DNA from: Blastocladiella emersonii ATCC 22665 | Lineage: Eukaryota > Fungi > Blastocladiomycota | Length of the DNA: 64,000 nt | NCBI GenBank assembly: GCA_025594325.1 | Contig: JANHCV010000004.1 | Location: 62,001 to 126,000, forward strand | Direction: 5' to 3' | Part shown: positions 1-64,000 of the stretch, piece by piece | Position numbering within the stretch: the stretch's first letter is position 1 | How the letters are laid out: each line of letters opens with the position of its first letter | Made by a program: the position numbers and the translations under genes | Notes under the pieces: generated by a model | Told to the model about the DNA's origin: nothing | What the model saw: only the letters and a program-made list of their open reading frames with translations | Databases searched by the model: none

Positions 1-2963
1 GTCGAGCTCGACCGCGGGGAGGATCAGGCTCGCGTCGCCCGAGTGCACGCCCGCGTTCTCGACGTGCAGCGACACGGCGTCCGCAATCAGCGCGCCCTGG
101 TACGCCACGCCGTCCACATCAATCTCGTGCGCGCCCTCGATGAACTGCGTCACGACCACCGGGTGCTTGGGCGACACGCTCGCCGCCAGCGACAGGTACT
201 CGGTCAGCTCGCCCGCGTTGCGCGCCACGCGCATCGCCGCACCCGACAGCACGTACGACGGGCGGACCAGCACCGGGTACCCGACGCGCTCGGCAAACGC
301 CACCGCCTCGGCCGGCGTCGTCAGCTGCTGCCACTGCGGCTGCGCCACGCCCGCCGCGTCCAGCACCTGCGAGAACTGGTGCCGGTCCTCGGCCGCGTCG
401 ATCATCTTGGGCGAGGTCCCCAGCACCGCGCACCCGGCCGCGGACAGCGGCAGCGCAATGTTCTGCGCCAGCTGGCCGCCCACGGAAACCACCACGCCCG
501 TCGCCGCCTCGGCCTGGTAGATGTCGAGCACGCGCTCGAGCGACAGCTCCTCAAAATACAGGCGGTCGGCCTCGTCGTAGTCGGTCGACACCGTCTCGGG
601 GTTGTAGTTGACCATGACCGTTTTCTTGCCCATGCCGCGCAGCGTGCGGATCGCCGACACGCCGCACCAGTCGAACTCGACCGACGACCCGATCCGGTAC
701 ACGCCCGACCCGAGGACCATGGTGCCGTGGGCGTCAAACGTCACGTCGTGGGCGCTGCCGTGGTACGTCATGTACAGGTAGTTGGTGTCGGCGGGGAACT
801 CGCCGGCAACGGTATCGATGCGCTTGATCCAGGGGGTGACGCCGAGCTGCGTGCGGTGCGCGCGCACCGCGAGCTCCGACGGCTGCGACGTGAGGGCGCC
901 GGCGATCTGCTTGTCCGAGAACCCGAGCTGCTTGGCGGTGCGCACCGTGGTCGCGTCGAGCGTCGACAGGTCCGCGTGCGTGGACAGCGCGCGGTGCGCC
1001 GTGGCAATGTTGGCCAGCTTGTACAGGAACCACCGGTCCACCTTGGTGATCTCGAACAGCTCGTCGACCGTGTGCGTGCCGCGGTGCAGGGCCTCGCTCA
1101 GGTGGAACATGCGCGTGTCCGACGGCTTGGCCAGCAGCGCCGTGAGCCGCGACTTGGCCGCCTCGAGCGACTCGGCCGCGGGCGCAGCCTGCGGCGCGAA
1201 CCCGTCAATCGAGGGGTCGACCATGCGCATGGCCTTCTGCAGCGACTCCTCGAAGGTGCGGCCAATGGCCATGACCTCGCCGACCGACTTCATCTGCGAC
1301 CCGACGCTACGGCCGACGTGCGCGAACTTGGCGAGGTCCCAGCGCGGGATCTTGGTGACCACATAGTCGAGCGACGGCTCGAAGCACGCGGTGGTGGTCT
1401 TGGTGACGCCGTTGCGCAGGTCGGGCAGGCTGTAGCCTAGCGCGATCTTGGCGGCGACGAGGGCGAGCGGGTAGCCCGTGGCCTTGGACGCGAGCGCCGA
1501 CGACCGCGACAGGCGCGCGTTGACCTCGATGACGGCGTACTCGAGCGTGTCCGGGTTGAGCGCGTACTGCACGTTGCACTCGCCGACGACGCCGAGGTGG
1601 CGGATGATGCGGATCGCGGCGGTGCGCAGCATGTGGTACTCCTGGTCCGACAGCGTCTGCGACGGCGCGACGACCACGCTGTCGCCCGTGTGGACGCCGA
1701 GCGGGTCGAGGTTTTCCATGTTGCACACGGTGATGCAGTTGTCCTCGGCGTCGCGGACCACCTCGTACTCGACCTCCTTCCACCCCTTCATGGACCGCTC
1801 GACGAGGATCTGCGGCGACAGCGTCAGGGACTGCGTCGCGAGCGCGTGCAGCTCGTCCGCGTCGTTGGCGAAGCCGGACCCGAGGCCGCCGAGCGCGAAC
1901 GCGGACCGCACGATGACCGGATAGCCGATATCCTTGGCCGCGGCGAGGGCCTCGTCGACCGTCTCGACGGCAACGCTGGTGGCGATCGGGATGTCGATCT
2001 CCTGCAGGGCCTTGGCGAACAGGTCGCGGTCCTCGCTTCTCTCCAGGGTGGAGATCTGCGTGCCGAGCACCTTAATCTTGTACTTTGCGAGGACGCCCGA
2101 CTTGTCGAGGGCAATGCCGACGTTGAGCGCCGTCTGGCCGCCGAAGGTGAGCAGGATGCCGTCGGGGCGCTCCTTGGCGATCACCTCCTCGACGTACTCG
2201 GGGGTCACGGGCAGGAAGTAGACGCTGTCGGCGAGGTTGCGGTCCGTCTGCACCGTGGCGATGTTCGGGTTGATGAGGATCGTGTGCACGCCCTCGTCCT
2301 TGAGCGCCTTGATGGCCTAGGTGGGTCGCGCGTAGGTCGGTGTCAGCGACTGTCCCGAGTGCGGATCAGAGCGAGGAGAAAAAGGCTCGTACTTGGCTAC
2401 CCGAGTAGTCAAACTCGCCAGCCTGGCCGATGGAGAGGCCGCCAGAGCCAATGACGAGCACGCGCTTGGCCAGGGGCACGCGGGCCGACGAAAAGGTGGG
2501 CTCGGAGGCCGTGGCGCCGGCGGCGTTGGACGAACCGGACGCGGCAGCAGCAGCAGCAGCCGACGTCGAGTGCCACCGGTAGCCGCCGACGTTGAGGACG
2601 ACCGACTTGGGGTACGGCTTCGGACCGGCTACGGCTGCGGGGGCGCCGGGCTTGGTCCATGGCCACGCGCCCGAGGTGGTGGCGACGGTTACTGGGCGAT
2701 GTGCCGCGACGGAGAAGGACCTGTTGGGCGAGGATCGAGCGAGCGATGAGTGTGGGATCACGGGGACTTGGTAAGGACGAGGAGCACGCGTACCGCTTGC
2801 CGGGTAGAGCGCCAGGTAGACACGGCGGGTGCGGATTCGAGGGCACGGTGGCGGCCGACGACAGGGCGCGGGTACGAAGCAGGCCGCGGTGCGGCAGGCT
2901 CGAGGCGCGGAGGCGGAGGGGATTGGAAGCGACGGCAGCCGACAGACGAAGCATCATGGTCAT
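1..2963 (-). CDS. CPA2: Carbamoyl-phosphate synthase large chain, arginine-specific type with mitochondrial presequence; 3' part runs off the window. Introns 2721-2793 and 2317-2392
   Basis: Spliced translation gives hallmark CPS motifs: [23 protein letters not shown]|[65 protein letters not shown]. The N-terminus is Arg/Ser/Ala-rich ([11 protein letters not shown]). Splice phases are consistent. Confidence 0.95.
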
Positions 2964-54136: not shown

Positions 54137-54210
54137 GGCGGCGGATGCGTACACGACCTTGGAATCACGGCCGGCAAGGCAGGAGCGCGAGGAAAGTCAC
54201 GCCGAGGAGC

Positions 54211-54338
54211 TGGCCAGCCCAACCCTGACCCCCTGGCGTAGGATTGACGAGTCGACCTGCAGCCCGCCCTGGCCCTCGATGGTCACGATCATCTGTTCGG
54301 GCGTGTCGACGAGCTTGAGCGAGATGGAGAAGCGGTCC
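54211..54338 (-). pseudogene. Inverted, decayed fragment of the receptor gene (source ~43238-43389)
   Basis: DRFSISLKLVD-TPEQMIVTIEGQGGLQVDSSI versus source DRFSISLKLVDYFQNVAVDTPDQVIVTIEGQGGLQVDSSI; long runs of DNA identity and a 24-nt deletion between two GTCGAC copies. Confidence 0.9.
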
Positions 54339-54734
54339 GTGATAAGGGCGGATGGGCGCGTCGTCACGACGCGCCGATCAAGCGCACGTGCGATCCTTTG
54401 CAAAATTCTCTCGCTCAGCGGTTGGCAGCTCGAATCTGTGTGTAATTATTGCATCCAATATTATTAACTTTATAATTTATAAAAACACTCCGCACTGGCC
54501 GATCCAAACCGCTTCTGAGATGTCGACCTATCGCGATGTGTTGGGATTTGTCACGTGGCCCGGCCGATCCCACTGAACACGGCCGAACGTGCAGCAGCAA
54601 CGCGAGGATGGATTTCGTTCGCTCGAGCAGGCTGCCGGCGGCCCCGTCCGTGGGGATAAAAGGCAGCGCGACCTCGCCCTCCTCCCCTTCTCCCTTGTGC
54701 TGATCGAGCCTGACCTCAAAGCAACGTAATCAAG

Positions 54735-56027
54735 ATGTCGTCCAACCCCCGCGTCTACTTCGACATGACTGGTCCGTGGCCCTCGACACCCGCCCGCCCT
54801 CGCCCCGGCGCTTCGCGCCTCGCTGCCTCGCCGCCATGACCGCTGTGACCGCCGTAACCGCCGCAACCGCCGCCTTCGCCGATCTTCCGTAATCGTCCGC
54901 ACGGGCCATCACCGTGCAGAACTCGCGGTCAGGATGTGGCGAGCAACGCGAGGGCCTGGGCGCACCTTACAGATCGCTCGGACTCTACTCACTTTTGCCT
55001 CTTCCCAAATCCCTCACCATGTAGCCGACGGCAAGCCGCTCGGCCGCATCGTCATGGAGCTGCGCGCTGGTACGGATCACCAACGTTGAGCCCGAGTGGC
55101 GGTGCAGCACGGTCGAGATCGTGTGTGACTGACACTCCCGACCTCCCACCACCTCCCACCACCTCCCTCGACATCCCATCACCTCTCTGATCTCCGTGCG
55201 GAAGATGTGGTCCCAAAGACTGCCGAGAATTTCCGTGCCCTCTGCACCGGCGAGAAGGGCTTCGGCTACTCGGGCTCGACCTTCCACCGCGTGATCCCCG
55301 ACTTCATGTGCCAGGTACGCATTTTCGGCATGTCTGGACCGCGGTACGCAGCGCGCGGCGGTCGTGCGCGTTCAGGCTTGTGTGTTGACCCGGGAGTGGG
55401 CCTGGGGTGACCTCGGGGTGAGCTCGAACTCGGCGATCGCGACGAGACCTCGACTCCCATCACTCACAACTCCCTTCTCCTCCCCCTTTTCAGGGCGGCG
55501 ACTTTACGGCCCATAACGGTACCGGCGGCAAGAGTATCTACGGGAACAAGTTTGCCGATGAGAACTTTGTGTACGTTCCGAAGTGTCGGAAGTGATCCGC
55601 GGTGTCCGGCGACCTCTCGCGGCTCCCGACCGTATCATCCCCTCCTCCCTACCCATCTTCCAGCTAGTCTCTCCCATCTCCTTGTGCTTATTTCGATGAC
55701 TTTCGACGTGTCGCGGACACCACACGCTCACCGACCTCTCTCCGCCTCACCTCGCGATCGTACGTGGGAACCCGCAACTCACCTTTCGACTACTCTAGCC
55801 TCAAGCACACTGGCCCGTACCTGCTGTCGATGGCCAACGCCGGCCCCAACACCAACGGCTCGCAGTTCTTCATCACCACGACCAAGACGGCCTGGCTCGA
55901 TGGCAAGCATGTCGTGTTCGGCTCCGTTATCGAGGGCCAGGACGTCGTGAAGACGATCGAGTCGTACGGCAGCTCGTCGGGCCGCACCTCGGCCAAGATC
56001 GCCGTCGCCGCCTCGGGCCAGCTCTAA
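54735..56027 (+). CDS. CPR1: Cyclophilin A (peptidyl-prolyl cis-trans isomerase); 5 exons, introns 54772-55024, 55070-55204, 55315-55493, 55571-55798
   Basis: Spliced product [12 protein letters not shown]|[15 protein letters not shown]|[33 protein letters not shown]|GGDFT..FADENF|[32 protein letters not shown]. Confidence 0.97.
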
Positions 56028-56996
56028 GTTCCTGGGACACCGCTACCGCTACGACCCGCCCACCAAGAATGACCCGCCGAGCACGCAGTTTGTCTCTCTC
56101 GAGTTCCTCCTCCTCCTGTTCCTCCTGATCTTCTGGTGAGACGGGTCTGATCGTCGTCATTCGACGTGAAGCCGTCCTCCAGCGAGCGTTTGAAGAAAAA
56201 CATACATGGAAGTCCTTCTGTGAACCCGACCCTCGCTGCGACTGCCAGGAGGACTTGAGAGTCGAACAAGGTTGTCCACCGCGCCTAGATTAGACGAACT
56301 GGCTGGCTGAATCGTTGTGTGCAACATGATGAGCGTCGACCCGCTTTGCCAAGTCTGCCACGGTGTGCATCGGCCGCACCTTTGACGCGTCGCTGCGGAG
56401 GGCCATGCGCATGGTCGGTCTCCCCTCGCTCTCGATCGACGGGTCCGCGTCGCCGTCGCTGCCCGCCGCCGAGTCGCGAGTGGCAGCCAAGTTGTTTGAG
56501 GCGGCCAAGTCGCGGCTCACGGGCTGCTCGCCATGTCGGCGGATACGCGCATGGTCCAACAGAGCAAGACGGTAAGGCTTTGCTGAACGCACGCGGTCGA
56601 CGACTTGCTCGAGCGATGGCGTGGCTCACGTTGGCCACGCACCCGGACCTGGCGACCCTCGACGCGACGACGGTTCGCATGACCAAGCAGTTCGCTGGCG
56701 CGTTGGCGCTGCGGTCGTCCGACGGCTCGCATCGCACGCAGCTTTGCGTCACGCCCTGGATCAAGCACATTGACACGGTCGCGAAGAACGAGTTTTTTTT
56801 TGATTCAGTCGCCACCCACGCGGTACCTTAAGTCGTCTTGAGCACGCCTTGTAATGCGACGAGCGTGGGTCGCGTCACGCTCGCGCGGCGATCGACGTGT
56901 CTCATCTCTCACGCCCGTCACGTGATAAATCGACGCGTCCGGCGAGCCCCTCGACCCGCGTCAGGGGGGGGAGCGCAGCACCACTACAGTACCCCT
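55871..56996 (+). repeat. Left arm (1126 bp) of a near-perfect long inverted repeat
   Basis: Reverse complement of 59196-60324. Mirror-image ORFs appear in the track (56285-56815 vs 59377-59907; 56319-56831 vs 59361-59873). The only difference I found is (GGA)4 vs (GGA)5. Confidence 0.95.
56369..56795 (+). pseudogene. Decayed fragment of the carbamoyl-phosphate synthase gene (source ~795-1265), inverted relative to the source
   Basis: [27 protein letters not shown] and [32 protein letters not shown] versus [30 protein letters not shown] and [32 protein letters not shown]; indels and frameshifts are present. Confidence 0.92.
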
Positions 56997-57181
56997 GCCA
57001 GCACTCCTGGTGATTCACCAGGAGTGAGTCAAGTGAGTCAAGTGGTCTGTAACTGTGGTAGGAGAGCTTTAGGGGGCGGAGGAGGAGGAACCTCGCCTCC
57101 TCGGACCTACAAAGCCGGACCGGCCCCCGATCCCCTTCTCTCGTTGGTCTCTCGAACAACAAGTTAAACCAAAACCAAACC

Positions 57182-58672
57182 ATGTATCGCTTTTCACGAC
57201 TTTCTCGGCTCACACGTGCACCGGTCCTTGCTCGCGTCGCTCGGCTCGCGTCGCCGATTGTGGCTCAAGCTGTCCAGCTGCAGGCTGGCGCGCTCTCCCG
57301 CCGCCATGCGCTGCCTCACCAACACTTTGTCCGCTTCGCGACGACGACTGCCCAGCAGACTCCCGTCGCTTCCGAACTTCTCCTTGACCTGGAGCACGTT
57401 GGCACAGCCATCAACGTTTATCACGCTGCAGGCTTCGAGAAGGAGAAGGCTGTCAAGAACCTGTCGTGGCTCAACGACGCCTCCAAGTGCACGCCCGCTG
57501 CCTTTGACGCTTTGTTGGACGAGTTTGCCAAGCTTCCATCGTGGGCCGACTCGGTCGACGACGAGTGGTGCAACGGCGTGAACGAGGCCGTCCTGCGCCT
57601 CGTCAAGCTCGAGGGCATCAAGGACATTGCCGCGTCGCGCCCGGATCTCATTACCAAGCTTGCCATCATCGCTGGCAAACGTCGCCTTGAGAACGATGCC
57701 GTGCGCGCAGTCGTCGATCTGGTCGCCGCGGCAGGTAATCGCGCCGAAGCCATCCTTCCGCTCTACGCCGAGGTGTACCGGACCTTGGGCCCATCGCCCG
57801 TCAAGACCATGGCCGCGGCCGCGGTCGGCCTGACGCCGCTCGACCGCGTCCGGATCGAGGCCACGACTACTTATGATGACGCGCGCGTCCGTCAGATCGT
57901 GGACCGCGCGGTGGCCGACGGTCTTATTTCGCACAAGTGGGCGGACCCGGTCCTCAACTTTGCCCAGATTGACGTGATTCACGACCCCGCGGTGCCTTAT
58001 TCGTTCCGCCGCCTTGAGAAGATGGTCGCGGCGAAGCTCAAGGAGGCTCCTGGTTCGCGCAACAGCGTTGCTCTCACGCGCGAGATGTTTTCCATGTTCG
58101 GGTACTGCGCAAACAACGAGTTGCGCCACACGTTCTACGATGCTAATCAGGCGGCAGTGCTTGCCGGGCGGGTCGGGCTCGATCTGACGACCCGTGCCAA
58201 GTATCAAATGTCGAATACGTCCTCGGCCAGCACCGAGCTCAACGAGATCGCCCTCCATTATCTCGGCGAACGTGGTGACAAGCTTCCCGTCGTCTCGTGG
58301 CGCGTGCTTGTCGCGGTCATGGACGCCCACCTCTATTCTAAGGGGATCAGGGACTACGGCAAGCTCGACGATCTCCATCGACATGCTCTTTCGCTTCAAC
58401 ACCCGAACGTGCTCACCCCTGAGTACTACCACTACTTCGTAACTTGGATCAAGCTCCAGCATGTCCATGCTAACAATAAGCAGCACGAGGAGGAGCGAGA
58501 GTTCGACGAGTGGTGCGTCTCGGAAGCCGTTCGACTTGTGGACGAGATGCTCGGTCTTGGTATCCAGCCGCTCGACGCGACGATCAATTTTCTGGCGAAG
58601 CTTGGGCACGAGGCTGACTTCCCGCAGCTGCTCGAGGCGGCCTCCCGCTGCCGCGCGAAGCTCGCCACTTGA
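57182..58672 (+). CDS. Intronless helical-repeat (PPR-like) protein with predicted mitochondrial presequence
   Basis: 496-aa ATG ORF with an Arg-rich, acid-free N-terminus (MYRFSRLSRLTRAPVLAR). The C-terminal EAVRLVDEMLGLGIQPLDATINFL resembles a PPR motif. Confidence 0.65.
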   Translation: MYRFSRLSRLTRAPVLARVARLASPIVAQAVQLQAGALSRRHALPHQHFVRFATTTAQQTPVASELLLDLEHVGTAINVYHAAGFEKEKAVKNLSWLNDASKCTPAAFDALLDEFAKLPSWADSVDDEWCNGVNEAVLRLVKLEGIKDIAASRPDLITKLAIIAGKRRLENDAVRAVVDLVAAAGNRAEAILPLYAEVYRTLGPSPVKTMAAAAVGLTPLDRVRIEATTTYDDARVRQIVDRAVADGLISHKWADPVLNFAQIDVIHDPAVPYSFRRLEKMVAAKLKEAPGSRNSVALTREMFSMFGYCANNELRHTFYDANQAAVLAGRVGLDLTTRAKYQMSNTSSASTELNEIALHYLGERGDKLPVVSWRVLVAVMDAHLYSKGIRDYGKLDDLHRHALSLQHPNVLTPEYYHYFVTWIKLQHVHANNKQHEEEREFDEWCVSEAVRLVDEMLGLGIQPLDATINFLAKLGHEADFPQLLEAASRCRAKLAT

Positions 58673-58971
58673 AATGGACGCGAATTATGTTCAACAATGT
58701 GATGTTAATTGTTTGCTGTTATATAATGGGTTTTCTTGTTGATGATACGAATCAAGTCTCGCTTGTTGCAATGGTATAATGTTCGTCGTCGACTTCGTGA
58801 GTGGGCCGCGCCGTTGCAGCGTTGGTCGGCTTGCGGGAACACCTCTCGCGCGACGCGCTCCTGACCGTTGGATCACGGCTCCAATCAACGCAGTGTTTGG
58901 CTTACAAAGTCGCGTTCAAAGTGGATCAAACCCTTTCGCTGGTCCATTTCTCTGCCGTGTACATCGGTGTG

Positions 58972-59195
58972 TCGCGCAGGCGGGTCAGAAGCGGCGTGGT
59001 TGATGTAAGCGAACAAGGAGCAGGGAGCACCACGGCGGCGCGGAAGTTCAAGCTCGATTCGCTGCGACAGTCGGTGACCGTGGCCATCGTCGGCGCGAAG
59101 TCCAAGATCGCGTCGCTCAAGGAGATCACGGGCGCCAGCCACCGCGCGGCCATCAAGCGCGCGCGCTCGAACCGATCAAGGACCCGCCTGCGCGA
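58972..59195. repeat. 224-bp segment bounded by a perfect 15-bp inverted repeat (TCGCGCAGGCGGGTC / GACCCGCCTGCGCGA)
   Basis: 58972-58986 is the exact reverse complement of 59181-59195, which abuts the right arm of the long inverted repeat. Confidence 0.85.
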
Positions 59196-59396
59196 AGGGG
59201 TACTGTAGTGGTGCTGCGCTCCCCCCCCTGACGCGGGTCGAGGGGCTCGCCGGACGCGTCGATTTATCACGTGACGGGCGTGAGAGATGAGACACGTCGA
59301 TCGCCGCGCGAGCGTGACGCGACCCACGCTCGTCGCATTACAAGGCGTGCTCAAGACGACTTAAGGTACCGCGTGGGTGGCGACTGAATCAAAAAA

Positions 59397-59823
59397 AAAC
59401 TCGTTCTTCGCGACCGTGTCAATGTGCTTGATCCAGGGCGTGACGCAAAGCTGCGTGCGATGCGAGCCGTCGGACGACCGCAGCGCCAACGCGCCAGCGA
59501 ACTGCTTGGTCATGCGAACCGTCGTCGCGTCGAGGGTCGCCAGGTCCGGGTGCGTGGCCAACGTGAGCCACGCCATCGCTCGAGCAAGTCGTCGACCGCG
59601 TGCGTTCAGCAAAGCCTTACCGTCTTGCTCTGTTGGACCATGCGCGTATCCGCCGACATGGCGAGCAGCCCGTGAGCCGCGACTTGGCCGCCTCAAACAA
59701 CTTGGCTGCCACTCGCGACTCGGCGGCGGGCAGCGACGGCGACGCGGACCCGTCGATCGAGAGCGAGGGGAGACCGACCATGCGCATGGCCCTCCGCAGC
59801 GACGCGTCAAAGGTGCGGCCGAT
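59397..59823 (-). pseudogene. Second copy of the decayed CPS fragment (inside the right arm)
   Basis: Mirror of 56369-56795. Confidence 0.9.
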
Positions 59824-60167
59824 GCACACCGTGGCAGACTTGGCAAAGCGGGTCGACGCTCATCATGTTGCACACAACGATTCAGCCAGCCAGTTCGTCT
59901 AATCTAGGCGCGGTGGACAACCTTGTTCGACTCTCAAGTCCTCCTGGCAGTCGCAGCGAGGGTCGGGTTCACAGAAGGACTTCCATGTATGTTTTTCTTC
60001 AAACGCTCGCTGGAGGACGGCTTCACGTCGAATGACGACGATCAGACCCGTCTCACCAGAAGATCAGGAGGAACAGGAGGAGGAGGAGGAACTCGAGAGA
60101 GACAAACTGCGTGCTCGGCGGGTCATTCTTGGTGGGCGGGTCGTAGCGGTAGCGGTGTCCCAGGAAC

Positions 60168-60324
60168 TTAGAGCTGGCCCGAGGCGGCGACGGCGATCTT
60201 GGCCGAGGTGCGGCCCGACGAGCTGCCGTACGACTCGATCGTCTTCACGACGTCCTGGCCCTCGATAACGGAGCCGAACACGACATGCTTGCCATCGAGC
60301 CAGGCCGTCTTGGTCGTGGTGATG
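60168..60324 (-). pseudogene. Duplicated 3' end (157 bp) of the cyclophilin last exon including its stop codon
   Basis: [51 protein letters not shown] is identical to the cyclophilin C-terminus; no upstream cyclophilin sequence is present. Confidence 0.93.
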
Positions 60325-60369
60325 TGTCGCGCCTGCACGACGCGTAACAATAGCTGCGATAACAAGCGT

Positions 60370-61515
60370 TTATTTCCGCCGTGCTAGGTCAAGCAGTGAC
60401 GGAACGTTGGGGTATTGGACAATGAGGTCGTAAGTCGCCATGTTCCAAGGCGATCGGGCAAAGGACACCGCTTCGTGAATCAGGGTACTCGCGAGGTCCT
60501 CTCGGCCGTTCAAGACTCGTGCGACGTCGCCGATACAGTCCTGGGATTGCGGGCTAGACGCCCTAATTGAGTGAGTTGCCGAACCGCGCGACGGGTTTGC
60601 TGTAGCAGAGCCAAGAACGCGTTGAACGACAAGATTTACGAGCGTCCGATCCATCTTCGCGTGCGAGACTGGACTCGAGGTAGACCCGCAATCGACGATG
60701 CGCGGTTGACCGAGAAGAATAGCGCCGTACACGGCATCGAGGTCGCGCTCGAGCCAAGCCGCAACCTTGGCGTGGACTCGTGGAGCGAGGCGCGAGGAAC
60801 CGTCCGTTGCACTTCCCCACGTCTGCCACTGCGTATCTGGCGAGCTCCCAACATGCGGGGCGCGCGCACCGCGGAGATAGACGAGCTCTCGGCGACAGAA
60901 TGCCAGGTGCGCCCGCTCAGTGGGATCGAGCGCCCGCCATATGGGGTCATCCACTGGATTGTGTGAGGCGGCACCAGTATTGAAATCCTGCGCTGTCGCT
61001 CCGGCTGCTCGACGTCGGGCAGGAGAAGGTCGAGCAGACTCGGATTTAGGTGCAACAGTACGCGGCAAACGCCAGCGAACGGGCGGAAGGTCGAGCTCGG
61101 CGGCGTCGCGCGAGGTGTCGCGAAGCGTTCCCTCCTCGAACGGCGCCTTGCACAGAGGACATAGCGGAGTTTGAAGATGAGACGGCACATTCCGAGAAGC
61201 CGGCCGGGAGTAAGGGTGGGCGCGAGCGCGCGAGGCCGAGGCCGGCGGGTTTGGGGCGCGATACATAGAAGCCACGGCCCAGTCTTCGATGCACGGGCGG
61301 CAGAACGTGTGGCCGCACGGCAGGACGACGGTGCTCGAGTCCAAGTCAAAGTCGACGGTCAAGCACACGGGGCACATGGTCCGCGCCGGGCCGGCTGGGT
61401 CGGCGGTCCCCGAGGCCGCAGCGGAGACGCGACTTGGCGACCCGTCGCGCACGTCATTGCAGGGACTGCCGAAGGTCTCCTGGGAGGGCTCTGCCCGCTG
61501 TCCATTCGATGCCAT
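60370..61515 (-). CDS. RING-finger (C3HC4) E3 ubiquitin ligase, Topors-like; probable start at 61515
   Basis: [22 protein letters not shown] motif and a C-terminal [24 protein letters not shown] resembling the Topors-family motif. Confidence 0.8.
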
Positions 61516-61668
61516 GGTTGCAAGGGAGCGCGAGCGCGGCGCCGCCAGCGTCGTCGAGTCACACGCGCCCGTCGCGCTGCCCACGCGCGTCGACTTGGGC
61601 AGCGCTCCCTCTCCCCGCGAGCCCGACCCTGCGCTGAACCGCGGCAGCTTCCATGAAAACTTGATGCA

Positions 61669-64000
61669 ATGTGGTTCATCTTCGGCGAAAAGGACGACAA
61701 GTGGGACAATGGCCGTACGTTCGGTTCCTCGTTGCACGGGCCGATCCCGCACCGCGGCGAGACCGCTGGCGGCCGGCGAGGACTGGCCGGCCGGCCCGCA
61801 GTGCCCGGCAAACTCGTGAGCCCGTGGACGGACGGCTGACTGTCCTCGGCTCGCGCCTGATAGCGACCTTCATTCCGCTTGAATGCGAGTCGTCGATCGA
61901 TTTCGGGCGCAAGTCCGGCCCCATGCTGCGCACCGAGGACAAGGGCGTCTCCAAGGTCCAGTTTCGCCTCGCTGTCGGCGAGTGCGACCCGCGGAACTTG
62001 GTGCGCTTCCTCCGGCCAAAGTGACGCGTAAAGCGGACACTCATCGCTGGCGACCAATCACCGCGCGCGCACCCTCACCTGTAGGCGCTGAACGGCACGG
62101 GAGTACCGCAGTATCCTCGCGTGTCTGTGGAGGATCTGAGCAGAAAGAGTACTTTTCTCAACGGCGCCGTGGTGCCGCCCGACGAGCGCCGGTATGCTGT
62201 CGCGCCAGTCAACGAGCTCCTGATCGGCAAGTTCCAGTGCTCGATGCTCATCATCCACGTCTCGGTCGTGTTTCTTCTCGACGAGTCTGTCCTCGGCGTC
62301 GCCGGTGTCGCGCAGGTCGTCGAGCTGGCCAAGAAGATTGGCGCCAAGATTGCCCCCGAGTGGTCGCCCGCGTGCACCCACGTCGTGTCTGCGCCAACGA
62401 GCTCGGCGTCGCCGCTGTTCACCCTCGCCCGCGTCAAGGGCATGTCCGTGGTCTCGCTTGACTGGATCAACCAGCTTGCCGGCAGCGTTGCCGCGGTCTA
62501 CCCGTACACGCACGCGACGCCGCAGGAAGAGATCCAGGTGTGGATGAAGCCGGCCGACATTCGCGCCGCGACCGCGCCACTTGCGCACAGCCGGATCCTT
62601 GCCTCGCACACGATTGTCCTCACGCCCGATGCGGTCGCCGCCATTGGCGAGAGCCAGGTCCCCGTTTTCGGCCAGGTGCTGCGCCATTTCGGCGGATCCG
62701 ACCCAGTGATGGCCACTTCGGCCACGGCTCCGACAGGCGTCCCGATCCACGTCGGCACCACCTCGACCTGCAGCGTCCCCTCGGCGACTCGCTACACCAC
62801 CCTGTCCGCCTTTTTGGACGGGCTCCTCGCCAACCAGGTGACGTCTACCGTGGTCCGTGGCGGACTCGGCGCCACGCAGGGAACCGCTGCTGGGTCGGCA
62901 CCTCGCCTCGCTCCGCGCCCGGCGGGCATCACCACCCCCGGCGCAACCCCGATCGCGTCATCCTCCGCATTCGGAAGCGTCCTCGACGACATCTTTCACA
63001 ACGCCATGTCGGGCTCCGCGCGGCCGGCAGCGACCCAGGCGCGGGGTTCCAGTTTGGCGCCCCGCCGCGCGACGCAGGCCCAGCCCAGCGCTGGCACAGG
63101 CACGGGCGCCCTTTTTGCTCTCGGCGACCTGTTCAGCCGCGCGTCGGCTTCGGCTTCGTCCTCGCTTCGCCCCGAAAACTCGCTTCGGCAGCAGGGCTCG
63201 CAGCCGCCACGACCTGGCACGCGCGAGACCTCGCGCGCGTCCACTGCTACGGGACAGACCGGTGCCGGTACCGCGCGGCCGGGCACGACGCGTACTCGCG
63301 CCGCACCCATCTCGAGCCTGTACGGCACCGAGGTGCGGCTCGAGCAACTCGGGATCCCGCAGCCGGCGGCACCCGCGGCTCCACCGGCGCCTGCTCCCGA
63401 ACCGACCAGCGCGGCGACCCCCGCACCGAGTACTTCCTCGTCGCAGATCCCCGCACCCAACGATGTTGAGTCGGCGGGCGCGACCGAGGGCGAACCCGCG
63501 GCGGCTACAGGTGCGGCGGGTTCGGCATCGCAGGCTCGCGCGACGATCCCGTCGCCCGAACCGGAACCCGACTCGGCGGCCGCGACCCCGGCTCCGTCCG
63601 CGCCCGCACCGAGCGAGGAGTCGCAGGCCATTGACCCCGACGTCGATCCCGAGACGCTCTCGGGCCTGCTGCGCGTGTCGTACGTCAAGCTCGTCGTCGA
63701 TCCCGCCACGTCGACCACCACGGCGTGCCGCCCGGGCTACGTCAACGCGTACCCGGCCTCGCAGGCAGCGGCGGCGGGCAGCGCGGGCGTGTCGTCGCAG
63801 GATGGCGGGAGCGCGACACTCGACTCGTCGCAGCGGTGGGCGGGCCGGCGCAACTTCAAGCGGTTCCGCAAGTCGCAGGCGCCGAACCCGCTGCTCAAGG
63901 TGATCCTGCCGCTCGGTCTCATCGCCAACGTCCCGATCAACGGCGGGGGCAGCGACAGCGACGAGGACGAGCTCGGCAGCGCGGCACGCCGGCGCCGACG
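61669..64000 (+). CDS. NBS1: Nibrin/NBS1 (FHA + BRCT + Mre11-binding motif); multi-exon, 3' end beyond the window
   Basis: MWFI start, FHA (FGRK..DKGVSKVQF..DLSRKSTFLNG), BRCT (EWSPACTHVV..VVSLDWI) and the GRRNFKRFRK Mre11-interaction motif near 63850. Confidence 0.85.

Follow-up and report, generated by a model that had tools for sequence, protein, structure and literature searches.

A recent inverted segmental duplication with hairpin-prone DNA at its inner junction in Blastocladiella emersonii

Analysis of a 64-kb window (the whole stretch of DNA considered here) from Blastocladiella emersonii ATCC 22665 (GCA_025594325.1) showed that it contains a recent inverted segmental duplication, i.e. 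an interrupted palindrome with unique DNA on all sides. The structure is probably the evolutionarily very young scar of a passive templated inverted insertion that arose during break or replication repair. On its own it is a young structural variant of an ordinary kind, without demonstrated function. It is also a clean natural example in which the donor, the copy and all four break points are legible to the base, and in which the two sides of one junction carry the strongest hairpin motifs of the 64-kb window.

Structure of the inverted repeat

The inverted repeat was recovered in three ways, by repeat search, MAFFT and blastn. Its left arm (55871-56996, forward strand) is 1126 bp long and its right arm (59196-60324, reverse strand) 1129 bp, and between them lies a single-copy spacer of 2,199 bp (56997-59195) with a depth of about 1x. 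Alignment of 55871-56996 to 60324-59196 by blastn gave 99.73% identity over 1129 columns with 0 substitutions. The lone difference is a 3-base gap, corresponding to one TCC/GGA unit, in a (TCC)n microsatellite located at 56105-56126 on the forward strand of the left arm, with its partner at 60066-60092. Blastn and alignment agree on exactly the arm coordinates of the original prediction, which had also named one GGA unit as the only difference between the arms. This length difference is not secure, as the arm contigs of sequencing runs X1 and X2 show the longer form only and the shorter form was found solely in one 47-nt, depth-2 contig of run X3. The repeat search extended the arms to 57003/59189, an extension with three mismatches among its seven bases, and the exact edges stay at 56996/59196. 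Past the arm ends, identity drops straight to background (18% and 23%, ungapped, over 100 nt). Two copies in opposite orientation were found in the window by blastn, with no third copy or triplication.

A young age is indicated by the lack of any substitution in 1126 bp and of residual homology past either edge. Counting against youth, an older duplication could have stayed identical through gene conversion, for which identical 1.1-kb inverted arms at a distance of 2.2 kb are good substrates. An older inverted duplication with arms held identical by frequent conversion is nevertheless quite unlikely. The edges of old converted repeats have usually decayed, whereas here identity is perfect up to both edges and reaches background within a few bases. 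Conversion would furthermore have to maintain a right arm for which nothing selects, because it contains only non-functional fragments.

Gene content and polarity of the arms

As had been described from the sequence, each arm is a mosaic of a cyclophilin 3' exon, its 3' flank, a CPS pseudo-fragment and DNA from upstream of the gene in the spacer. The cyclophilin gene (54735-56027, forward strand) is intact and consists of five exons (54735-54771, 55025-55069, 55205-55314, 55494-55570 and 55799-56027) with GT-AG borders at all introns and a spliced coding sequence of 165 aa. Its last exon matches PF00160 in Pfam with 79.7 bits against a cut-off of 21.7 (E 3.7e-22) and the annotated product carries the same family, which identifies the gene feeding the arm as a cyclophilin-type peptidyl-prolyl isomerase. 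Codons 114-165 and the stop codon (55871-56027) form the cyclophilin part of the left arm, and the upstream continuation of this arm is the rest of the last cyclophilin exon. The right arm starts in the middle of the exon, at codon 114, and is bordered by unrelated DNA on both sides. Since the left arm is continuous with the intact five-exon gene while the right copy is truncated from codon 114, the left arm is the donor and the right arm the new copy, in accordance with the polarity proposed originally. The locus is also relevant to annotation, since a 66-aa 'cyclophilin' gene was called in the new arm, overlapping the end of a neighbouring RING-finger ORF. An exact-protein look-up returned the source assembly only.

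The CPS fragment (56368-56782, forward strand) is old and frameshifted and derives from the oligomerisation region of carbamoyl-phosphate synthase. Relative to the real CPS gene (window positions 806-1267) it is an inverted copy with 67-72% identity, which was duplicated along with the arm in the recent event; the arm has a single exact 25-nt word in common with that gene.

Outside the right arm, the RING-finger ORF (60370-61752, reverse strand, 460 aa) is convergent with the 496-aa ORF of the spacer, and the right arm sits between these two convergent genes. The RING-finger stop codon lies 45 bp off the outer end of the right arm, and the 3' end of this gene therefore runs into a sense-oriented copy of the cyclophilin 3' exon and its 3' flank. 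No known RNA families were found within 53.5-61 kb.

Presence of the repeat in sequencing reads

Read support was assessed on Logan k=31 de Bruijn contigs from four runs, all from the same strain and one study, with two release years. Run X4 represents a different library type, because a loxP-type linker is present. The k-mer depth of the arm was about 265 versus about 130 in X1, and 62 versus 28-39 for the flanks in X2. The depth of the arm is thus about 2x in both runs, and the novel junctions are bridged. Contigs 19 and 23 of X3 span 59195|59196 and 60324|60325, the junctions unique to the new copy, and the 56996|56997 junction is spanned by a contig of X1. Separate PacBio HiFi and Illumina DNA preparations are described in the genome paper (PMC9730499), which lists HiFi reads with a mean length of 10.5 kb and in which the word 'inverted' is absent. 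The repeat is no assembly artefact and both copies are present in the DNA of the strain. From the twofold arm depth it also follows that the genome contains no further copies.

An allele without the right arm was considered on the basis of loose contig ends at 59180/59181, and was rejected. With 1-2 mismatches, a depth above 1x and sequences that vary from one to the next, these contigs are assigned to paralogous short repeats from elsewhere. The arm depth fits 2.0x and not 1.5x.

Inverted chimeras are known from amplified and long-read libraries, and some transposable elements have long terminal inverted repeats. It is nonetheless extremely unlikely that the structure is an assembly or library artefact (from chimeric or fold-back reads) or else a transposon in which terminal inverted repeats of 1.1 kb enclose the ORF. 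The former would have to produce doubled depth and bridged junctions in several libraries that differ in type and year. For a transposon or foldback element, the left 'end' would be the in-frame continuation of an intact cyclophilin exon, no target-site duplication or direct repeat is found at the outer ends of the arms, and the depth corresponds to only these two copies. Depth, junction contigs, the host-gene end and the missing target-site duplication together largely refute both possibilities.

The spacer gene and possible functions

The 2.2-kb spacer holds an intact gene, as predicted, in the form of an intronless and uninterrupted ORF of 496 aa (57182-58672, forward strand) with an Arg-rich N-terminus and a predicted all-alpha structure. 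An exhaustive HMMER search gave just four B. emersonii paralogues and one doubtful match, and a word search gave no match beyond the protein itself; the ORF belongs to a paralogue family confined, in these searches, to B. emersonii. No Pfam family was matched at E 0.1 and no solved structure matched the whole protein. The product contains one 26-residue PPR-consensus-like motif at residues 446-471, scoring about 3 bits per repeat against the designer-PPR consensus, and the profile of the paralogue family matches PPR chains via this motif alone. Language-model features gave a value of 0.90 to PPR clusters, and a single-sequence AlphaFold model was all-alpha with low confidence. The name 'PPR-like' given to this gene is consequently weakly supported: the single motif speaks for it, and the lack of a Pfam family and of a whole-protein structure match against it.

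The arm was also said to contain promoter DNA of this gene. The DNA in question is about 215 bp of distal upstream sequence. The proximal 185 bp belong to the spacer and are unduplicated; tandem TGAGTCA sites are located in this proximal part. Downstream of the stop codon comes an AT-rich 3' region, at a distance of more than 400 bp from the right arm.

Two functional roles can be envisaged. The structure could be an invertible (flip-flop) cassette that controls the 496-aa ORF, or its RNA could form hairpins or act in antisense to silence cyclophilin (and CPS). Intrachromatid recombination between identical inverted arms can invert a spacer, and flipping is physically plausible judging from the arrangement of the arms. 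Junction k-mers at k=31 are the same for either spacer orientation when the arms are identical, and the TCC marker was lost to bubble popping. Convergent transcription across the right arm could yield RNA antisense to the cyclophilin 3' end, and the 25-nt word would offer a link to the real CPS gene. A functional element is very improbable all the same. Flipping should matter little, because the proximal 185 bp moves with the spacer and the arms provide an equal 1.1-kb context on either side, and none of the scanned local ORFs contains a recombinase domain. A hairpin RNA would need read-through past the AT-rich 3' region, no RNA run contains the stretch, and the arms are haphazardly assembled from gene debris.

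Hairpin-prone DNA at the inner junction

A new observation concerns the inner junction, where both sides carry hairpin-prone DNA. On the donor side, a perfect 25-bp palindrome (12-1-12; 57002-57026) is found 5 bp past the inner end of the donor, and it is the only palindrome of the window with stems of at least 12 and a loop of at most 10. On the insertion side, an interrupted inverted repeat (58972-59195) has perfect 15-bp stems (58972-58986 and 59181-59195) around a 194-nt loop and is the longest of the eight perfect inverted repeats in the window with a stem of at least 12 and a loop of at most 300. Its right stem ends with base 59195, directly at the insertion junction 59195|59196. As single-stranded DNA, both motifs fold. 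Only 0.02% (palindrome) and 0.18% (inverted repeat) of the window positions are equally close to such motifs, and block shuffles yield 0.15 palindromes and 3.1 inverted repeats of these classes, figures that apply to an association spotted post hoc at a single junction. The 15-bp inverted repeat might alternatively mark the two termini of a small transposon-like element at which a transposase cut, or it might be a by-product of the event itself.

Besides 57002-57026, the window contains two palindromes with 10-bp stems. A second, older inverted local copy at 54208-54341 has one end 14 bp from a palindrome of this kind.

No junctional microhomology could be demonstrated, and microhomology-driven models therefore receive no specific support. 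The 10-mer TGTGTCGCGC is present at 58968 and again at 60323.

The position of the junction also bears on an origin in two steps. Here a fold-back template switch (ODIRA-like or snap-back) at the 15-bp repeat would first create an unstable palindrome with arms of about 3.1 kb, in which the 496-aa ORF is present a second time in inverted form. The inner 2 kb of one arm would then be deleted, with the repeat and the copied 25-bp palindrome as end points. The right stem does end, at its outer base, on the junction itself, the position from which an inverted copy starts in fold-back models, and both deletion end points would fall on hairpin-prone DNA. Erosion of short-spacer palindromes, by which the spacer lengthens, has been described (PMC10766186). 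This route is unlikely, however, as two events are required and the deletion must begin exactly at the last base of the stem. In addition, the DNA left of 58972 does not reappear as its reverse complement after 59195, and a third copy or triplication is absent.

Proposed mechanism

Three interpretations had been offered with the original prediction, and the one favoured by the sequence is a very recent fold-back or repair event, given the sharp edges, the absence of substitutions and the hairpin motifs. A templated inverted insertion could have proceeded as follows, in a scheme deduced after the fact from one junction and with reads of a single strain and study. At 59195, where the 15-bp interrupted inverted repeat has its base, the DNA would have broken or a fork stalled, and the free 3' end may then have primed synthesis on the nearby donor, 2.2 kb upstream. 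Synthesis would have started or stopped beside the 25-bp perfect palindrome (57002-57026), and the copied strand would have been sealed by essentially blunt end joining, so that the copy landed, inverted, in the gap between the two convergent genes. Once formed, the identical arms may recombine or convert and could flip the spacer; no sign of cellular use was seen.

A broader interpretation can be put forward tentatively, in which the event reflects a process typical of the lineage. Hairpin motifs (short perfect palindromes, interrupted inverted repeats and possibly Helitron 3' hairpins) would repeatedly seed inverted copying within the same chromosome, and the 6-kb stretch would record three successive events, namely copying of the CPS fragment over a distance of 55 kb, of a receptor exon over 11 kb and of the present arm over 2.2 kb. 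Though doubtful at present, this possibility would turn the genome into a natural model in which the birth, flipping and erosion of palindromes could be read at base resolution, and would also show how palindromes produce gene fragments and supply neighbouring genes with new 3' ends.

Comparison with known systems

The locus resembles ODIRA in that a junction falls on a short interrupted inverted repeat and that an extra copy arises in inverted orientation; in ODIRA the short repeat is the supposed site of a leading-to-lagging strand template switch (PMC10766186). It is not an ODIRA-type inverted triplication. ODIRA gives three copies, the middle one inverted, and its arms begin right at the short repeats, with the loop forming the centre of the palindrome, whereas the B. 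emersonii locus has two copies, with a depth of 2x and not 3x, and its copied segment begins 2.2 kb away. At the base of the stem the sequence continues as the reverse complement of 56996 leftwards, and not of 58971 leftwards. The dimensions differ as well, with 15-bp stems and a 194-nt loop in B. emersonii versus stems of about 5 nt and loops of 40-80 nt in yeast (PMC10766186).

Templated (synthesis-dependent) insertions at repaired breaks and fold-back inverted duplications around a single-copy spacer offer a further comparison, based in part on that work (PMC10766186). They have in common with the present locus a nearby inverted copy on the same chromosome, a single-copy spacer in the kilobase range, a retained donor, and base-sharp junctions with little or no homology. 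The B. emersonii event differs from them in being interstitial, balanced and 1.13 kb in size, with no terminal deletion or dicentric outcome, and in carrying perfect hairpin motifs on both sides of one junction.

Structure and reality of the inverted repeat

A blastn search of the region against the window recovered the 1.13-kb inverted repeat at exactly the coordinates of the original prediction, the left arm (55871-56996, plus strand) matching the right arm read from 60324 to 59196 with 99.73% identity over 1129 columns. MAFFT alignment revealed 0 substitutions in 1126 bp; the arms are distinguished solely by an additional TCC within a short (TCC)n run, corresponding to the single GGA unit (plus strand of the right arm) by which the arms had been said to differ. 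This difference is insecure, as the arm contigs of X1 and X2, two of four sequencing runs of the same strain, carry the longer form only, while the shorter form was seen only in a 47-nt contig of depth 2 from run X3. In the 100 nt next to the arms, ungapped identity is at background level (18% on the outer and 23% on the inner side); an automated repeat search stretches the arms to 57003 and 59189, but the added 7 bases include 3 mismatches. The spacer of 2,199 bp (56997-59195) does hold the intact gene claimed for it, in the form of an open frame of 496 codons (57182-58672; the 496-aa ORF).

The protein of this ORF has an exact match on contig JANHCV010000004.1 of assembly GCA_025594325.1. 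The genome (JANHCV000000000) was assembled by LJA from PacBio HiFi reads with a mean length of 10.5 kb and polished with Illumina reads, for which DNA was prepared separately by the methods of a 2014 paper (PMC9730499). For a read-level check, four public runs of one sample containing the stretch were used as Logan contigs (k=31); run X4 represents a different kind of library, as indicated by a loxP-type linker at the ends. In X2 the arm forms one 1129-nt contig of depth 62, with depths of 33.1, 32.9, 38.6 and 27.9 for flanks and spacer. A 1680-nt contig of X1, consisting of the arm and 551 nt of spacer, has a depth of 220.6 against 126-134 for its surroundings, from which the arm depth solves to about 265, or 2.0x. 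After allowing for the k-1 overlap, contig ends fall exactly at 55871, 56996 and 60324. The junction 56996|56997 is crossed by X1 contig 2, the inner junction (59195|59196) by X3 contig 19, which starts at 59141 and reaches far into the arm, and the outer junction (60324|60325) by X3 contig 23, which runs from 60097 past 60800. The predicted structure thus withstood the check for coverage collapse, and an artefact of the assembler or of a single library is ruled out by the depth and the bridging contigs. Since the doubled depth and bridged junctions recur in several libraries, the duplication belongs to the DNA of the strain, as judged from runs of one strain and one study.

Origin and content of the arms

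A cyclophilin gene on the plus strand (exons 54735-54771, 55025-55069, 55205-55314, 55494-55570 and 55799-56027, with GT-AG introns) splices to an intact 165-aa frame, and its last exon matches Pfam PF00160 (E 3.7e-22). The arm starts at codon 114, 72 nt into this last exon. Because the intact five-exon gene runs into the left arm, the left arm is native and the right arm a truncated copy, in agreement with the predicted order of events. A retrocopy origin was rejected; the copy was made at the DNA level.

Past the cyclophilin stop, the arm continues with some 340 bp of 3' flank, followed by a fragment of a carbamoyl-phosphate synthase (CPS) gene (56368-56782). This fragment reproduces a part of the real CPS gene in inverted orientation, frameshifted and with 67-72% identity (blastn E 2.7e-34 and 4e-13). 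The real large-chain gene (window 1-2316, minus strand) carries Pfam CPSase domains and continues beyond the left window edge; the arm fragment derives from its oligomerisation region, 55 kb away. The arm closes with roughly 215 bp from the distal upstream region of the 496-aa ORF. The proposed mosaic of cyclophilin exon, 3' flank and CPS fragment therefore holds, but its "promoter DNA" is distal upstream sequence only. Two tandem TGAGTCA motifs lie in the proximal 185 bp, which were not copied and remain single-copy in the spacer. These motifs, of the AP-1/Gcn4 type, belong to two tandem AGTGAGTCA units at 57023-57044, directly abutting a 25-bp palindrome and about 140-160 bp upstream of the start codon, in the non-duplicated part.

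The 496-aa ORF and possible functions

The 496-aa ORF has no Pfam match, and no relatives were found by word-index search. An exhaustive HMMER search of a library of 1.8 billion proteins returned only four paralogues, all from Blastocladiella emersonii ATCC 22665 according to NCBI (25-28% identity, E 1.9e-8 to 3.8e-4). The paralogues lend support to a coding role of the plus-strand frame, and within this library the ORF is part of a small family restricted to B. emersonii. Two of them, P0002 and P0004 (KAI9187836 and KAI9187835), are encoded on another contig under consecutive locus tags (H9P43_002227 and H9P43_002226) and may well be a tandem pair. Residues 446-471 are akin to the PPR consensus (about 3 bits per repeat), the profile of the paralogue family matches PPR chains in the PDB via one 35-residue position only, and language-model features point weakly to PPR-type clusters as the nearest (0.90). 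The AlphaFold single-sequence model is all-helical and of low confidence (pLDDT 45), and the whole protein has no match in the PDB. With a single motif, no Pfam match and a low-confidence model, the designation "PPR-like" was a reasonable guess and not a finding.

The repeat had further been proposed to flip the spacer or to form hairpin RNA, and we regard a functional element, be it an invertible cassette or a hairpin or antisense RNA locus, as highly improbable. The arms could recombine and thereby flip the spacer, but in either orientation the ORF would have the same 1.1 kb upstream of it and the proximal promoter would move along, so flipping is expected to be neutral; with identical arms, the junction k-mers of the k=31 contigs are the same for both orientations. 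For hairpin RNA, transcription from the cyclophilin gene would have to continue across the ORF and reach the right arm; antisense pairing would call for an ORF transcript reading past the AT-rich region directly after its stop. The search for runs containing the stretch gave no RNA run. The CPS fragment shares one exact word of 25 nt only with the real gene, and no Rfam matches were obtained in the region.

Insertion site

The right arm was placed between convergent genes, 523 bp past the stop of the 496-aa ORF and 45 bp past that of a 460-aa RING-finger ORF (60370-61752, minus strand; Pfam zf-RING, E ~1e-8), which on its own strand now leads into the copied 3' exon and 3' flank of the cyclophilin gene in sense orientation. 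The public gene list for the locus lacks this RING-finger ORF and includes a 66-aa 'Pro_isomerase' gene on the minus strand (60168-60441), composed of the copied cyclophilin fragment and the tail of the RING ORF, which is probably an annotation artefact caused by the duplication. Upstream of the RING ORF, the short divergent region contains a perfect 10-12-10 inverted repeat (61574-61605).

Junction anatomy

Perfect inverted repeats were enumerated across the whole 64-kb window, with block shuffles as control. The only palindrome with stems of at least 12 and a loop of at most 10 (12-1-12, 57002-57026) begins 5 bp past the inner end of the donor arm at 56996. With loops of up to 300, eight inverted repeats with stems of at least 12 occur, against a mean of 3.1 in the shuffles; the last base of the longest (15-bp stems, 58972-58986 and 59181-59195) is the base directly before the insertion at 59195|59196. 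Positions as near to such a palindrome make up only 0.02% of the window, and those as near to such an inverted repeat only 0.18%. Both motifs are predicted to fold as single-stranded DNA and form the two sides of a single junction, the inner one. No such hairpin motif was found at the outer junction (55871 joined to 60325), and no microhomology could be demonstrated at either. The link between junction and hairpins is strong, though it was spotted post hoc.

An older inverted local copy at 54208-54341 (75% identical to 43392-43235 over 158 columns, blastn) ends 14 bp from a 10-1-10 perfect palindrome (54355-54375); including this one, the window has just three palindromes whose stems reach 10. 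Its source is a coding stretch 11 kb away, and three inverted local copies of differing ages lie within 6 kb.

The 224 bp of 58972-59195 lie between perfect 15-bp inverted ends, with TG on each side once the arm is taken out, and might represent either a miniature mobile element or simply a structured intergenic stretch. The 10-mer TGTGTCGCGC occurs at both 58968-58977 and 60323-60332. Short contigs at 59130-59180 have 1.6-2.2x depth, and mismatched versions lead into two different other sequences from 59180/59181, suggesting a short dispersed repeat that ends 15 bp before the insertion point.

Mode and age of formation

The starting point of the duplication was probably a stalled fork or a break at the foot of the interrupted repeat with 15-bp stems, through hairpin or cruciform cleavage, or through end cleavage if 58972-59195 is a small element. 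A free 3' end would then prime synthesis on the donor, 2.2 kb off. Either the right-hand end would be extended from 55871 to 56996, halting just before the perfect palindrome, or a folded-back left-hand end would be extended from a start adjoining it, and near-blunt end joining would close the product. A two-step course, in which fold-back at the 15-bp repeat first gave a palindrome and one of its arms then eroded, as discussed for inverted copy-number variants of yeast and human (PMC10766186), requires an extra event and is unlikely.

The "very recent" event of the original prediction is favoured by the lack of substitutions and the base-sharp edges, which make an old inverted duplication kept alike by gene conversion quite unlikely. 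The duplication may have arisen during the 70 years of the strain in culture, and it is older than the separate DNA preparation for the Illumina library.

Comparison with known systems

The word 'inverted' is not used in the genome paper (PMC9730499), and what is new here is the junction anatomy, with the inner junction on hairpin motifs. Alone the locus is of modest weight; it gains more as a single case of what may be a hairpin-seeded process acting genome-wide. A transposon was rejected for want of a target duplication and of additional copies, and because one end falls within an intact gene. An ODIRA triplication was likewise rejected, since ODIRA yields three copies whereas this locus has two and, unlike in ODIRA, the short repeat is not where its arms start. 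The B. emersonii structure resembles a templated inverted insertion or a fold-back duplication.
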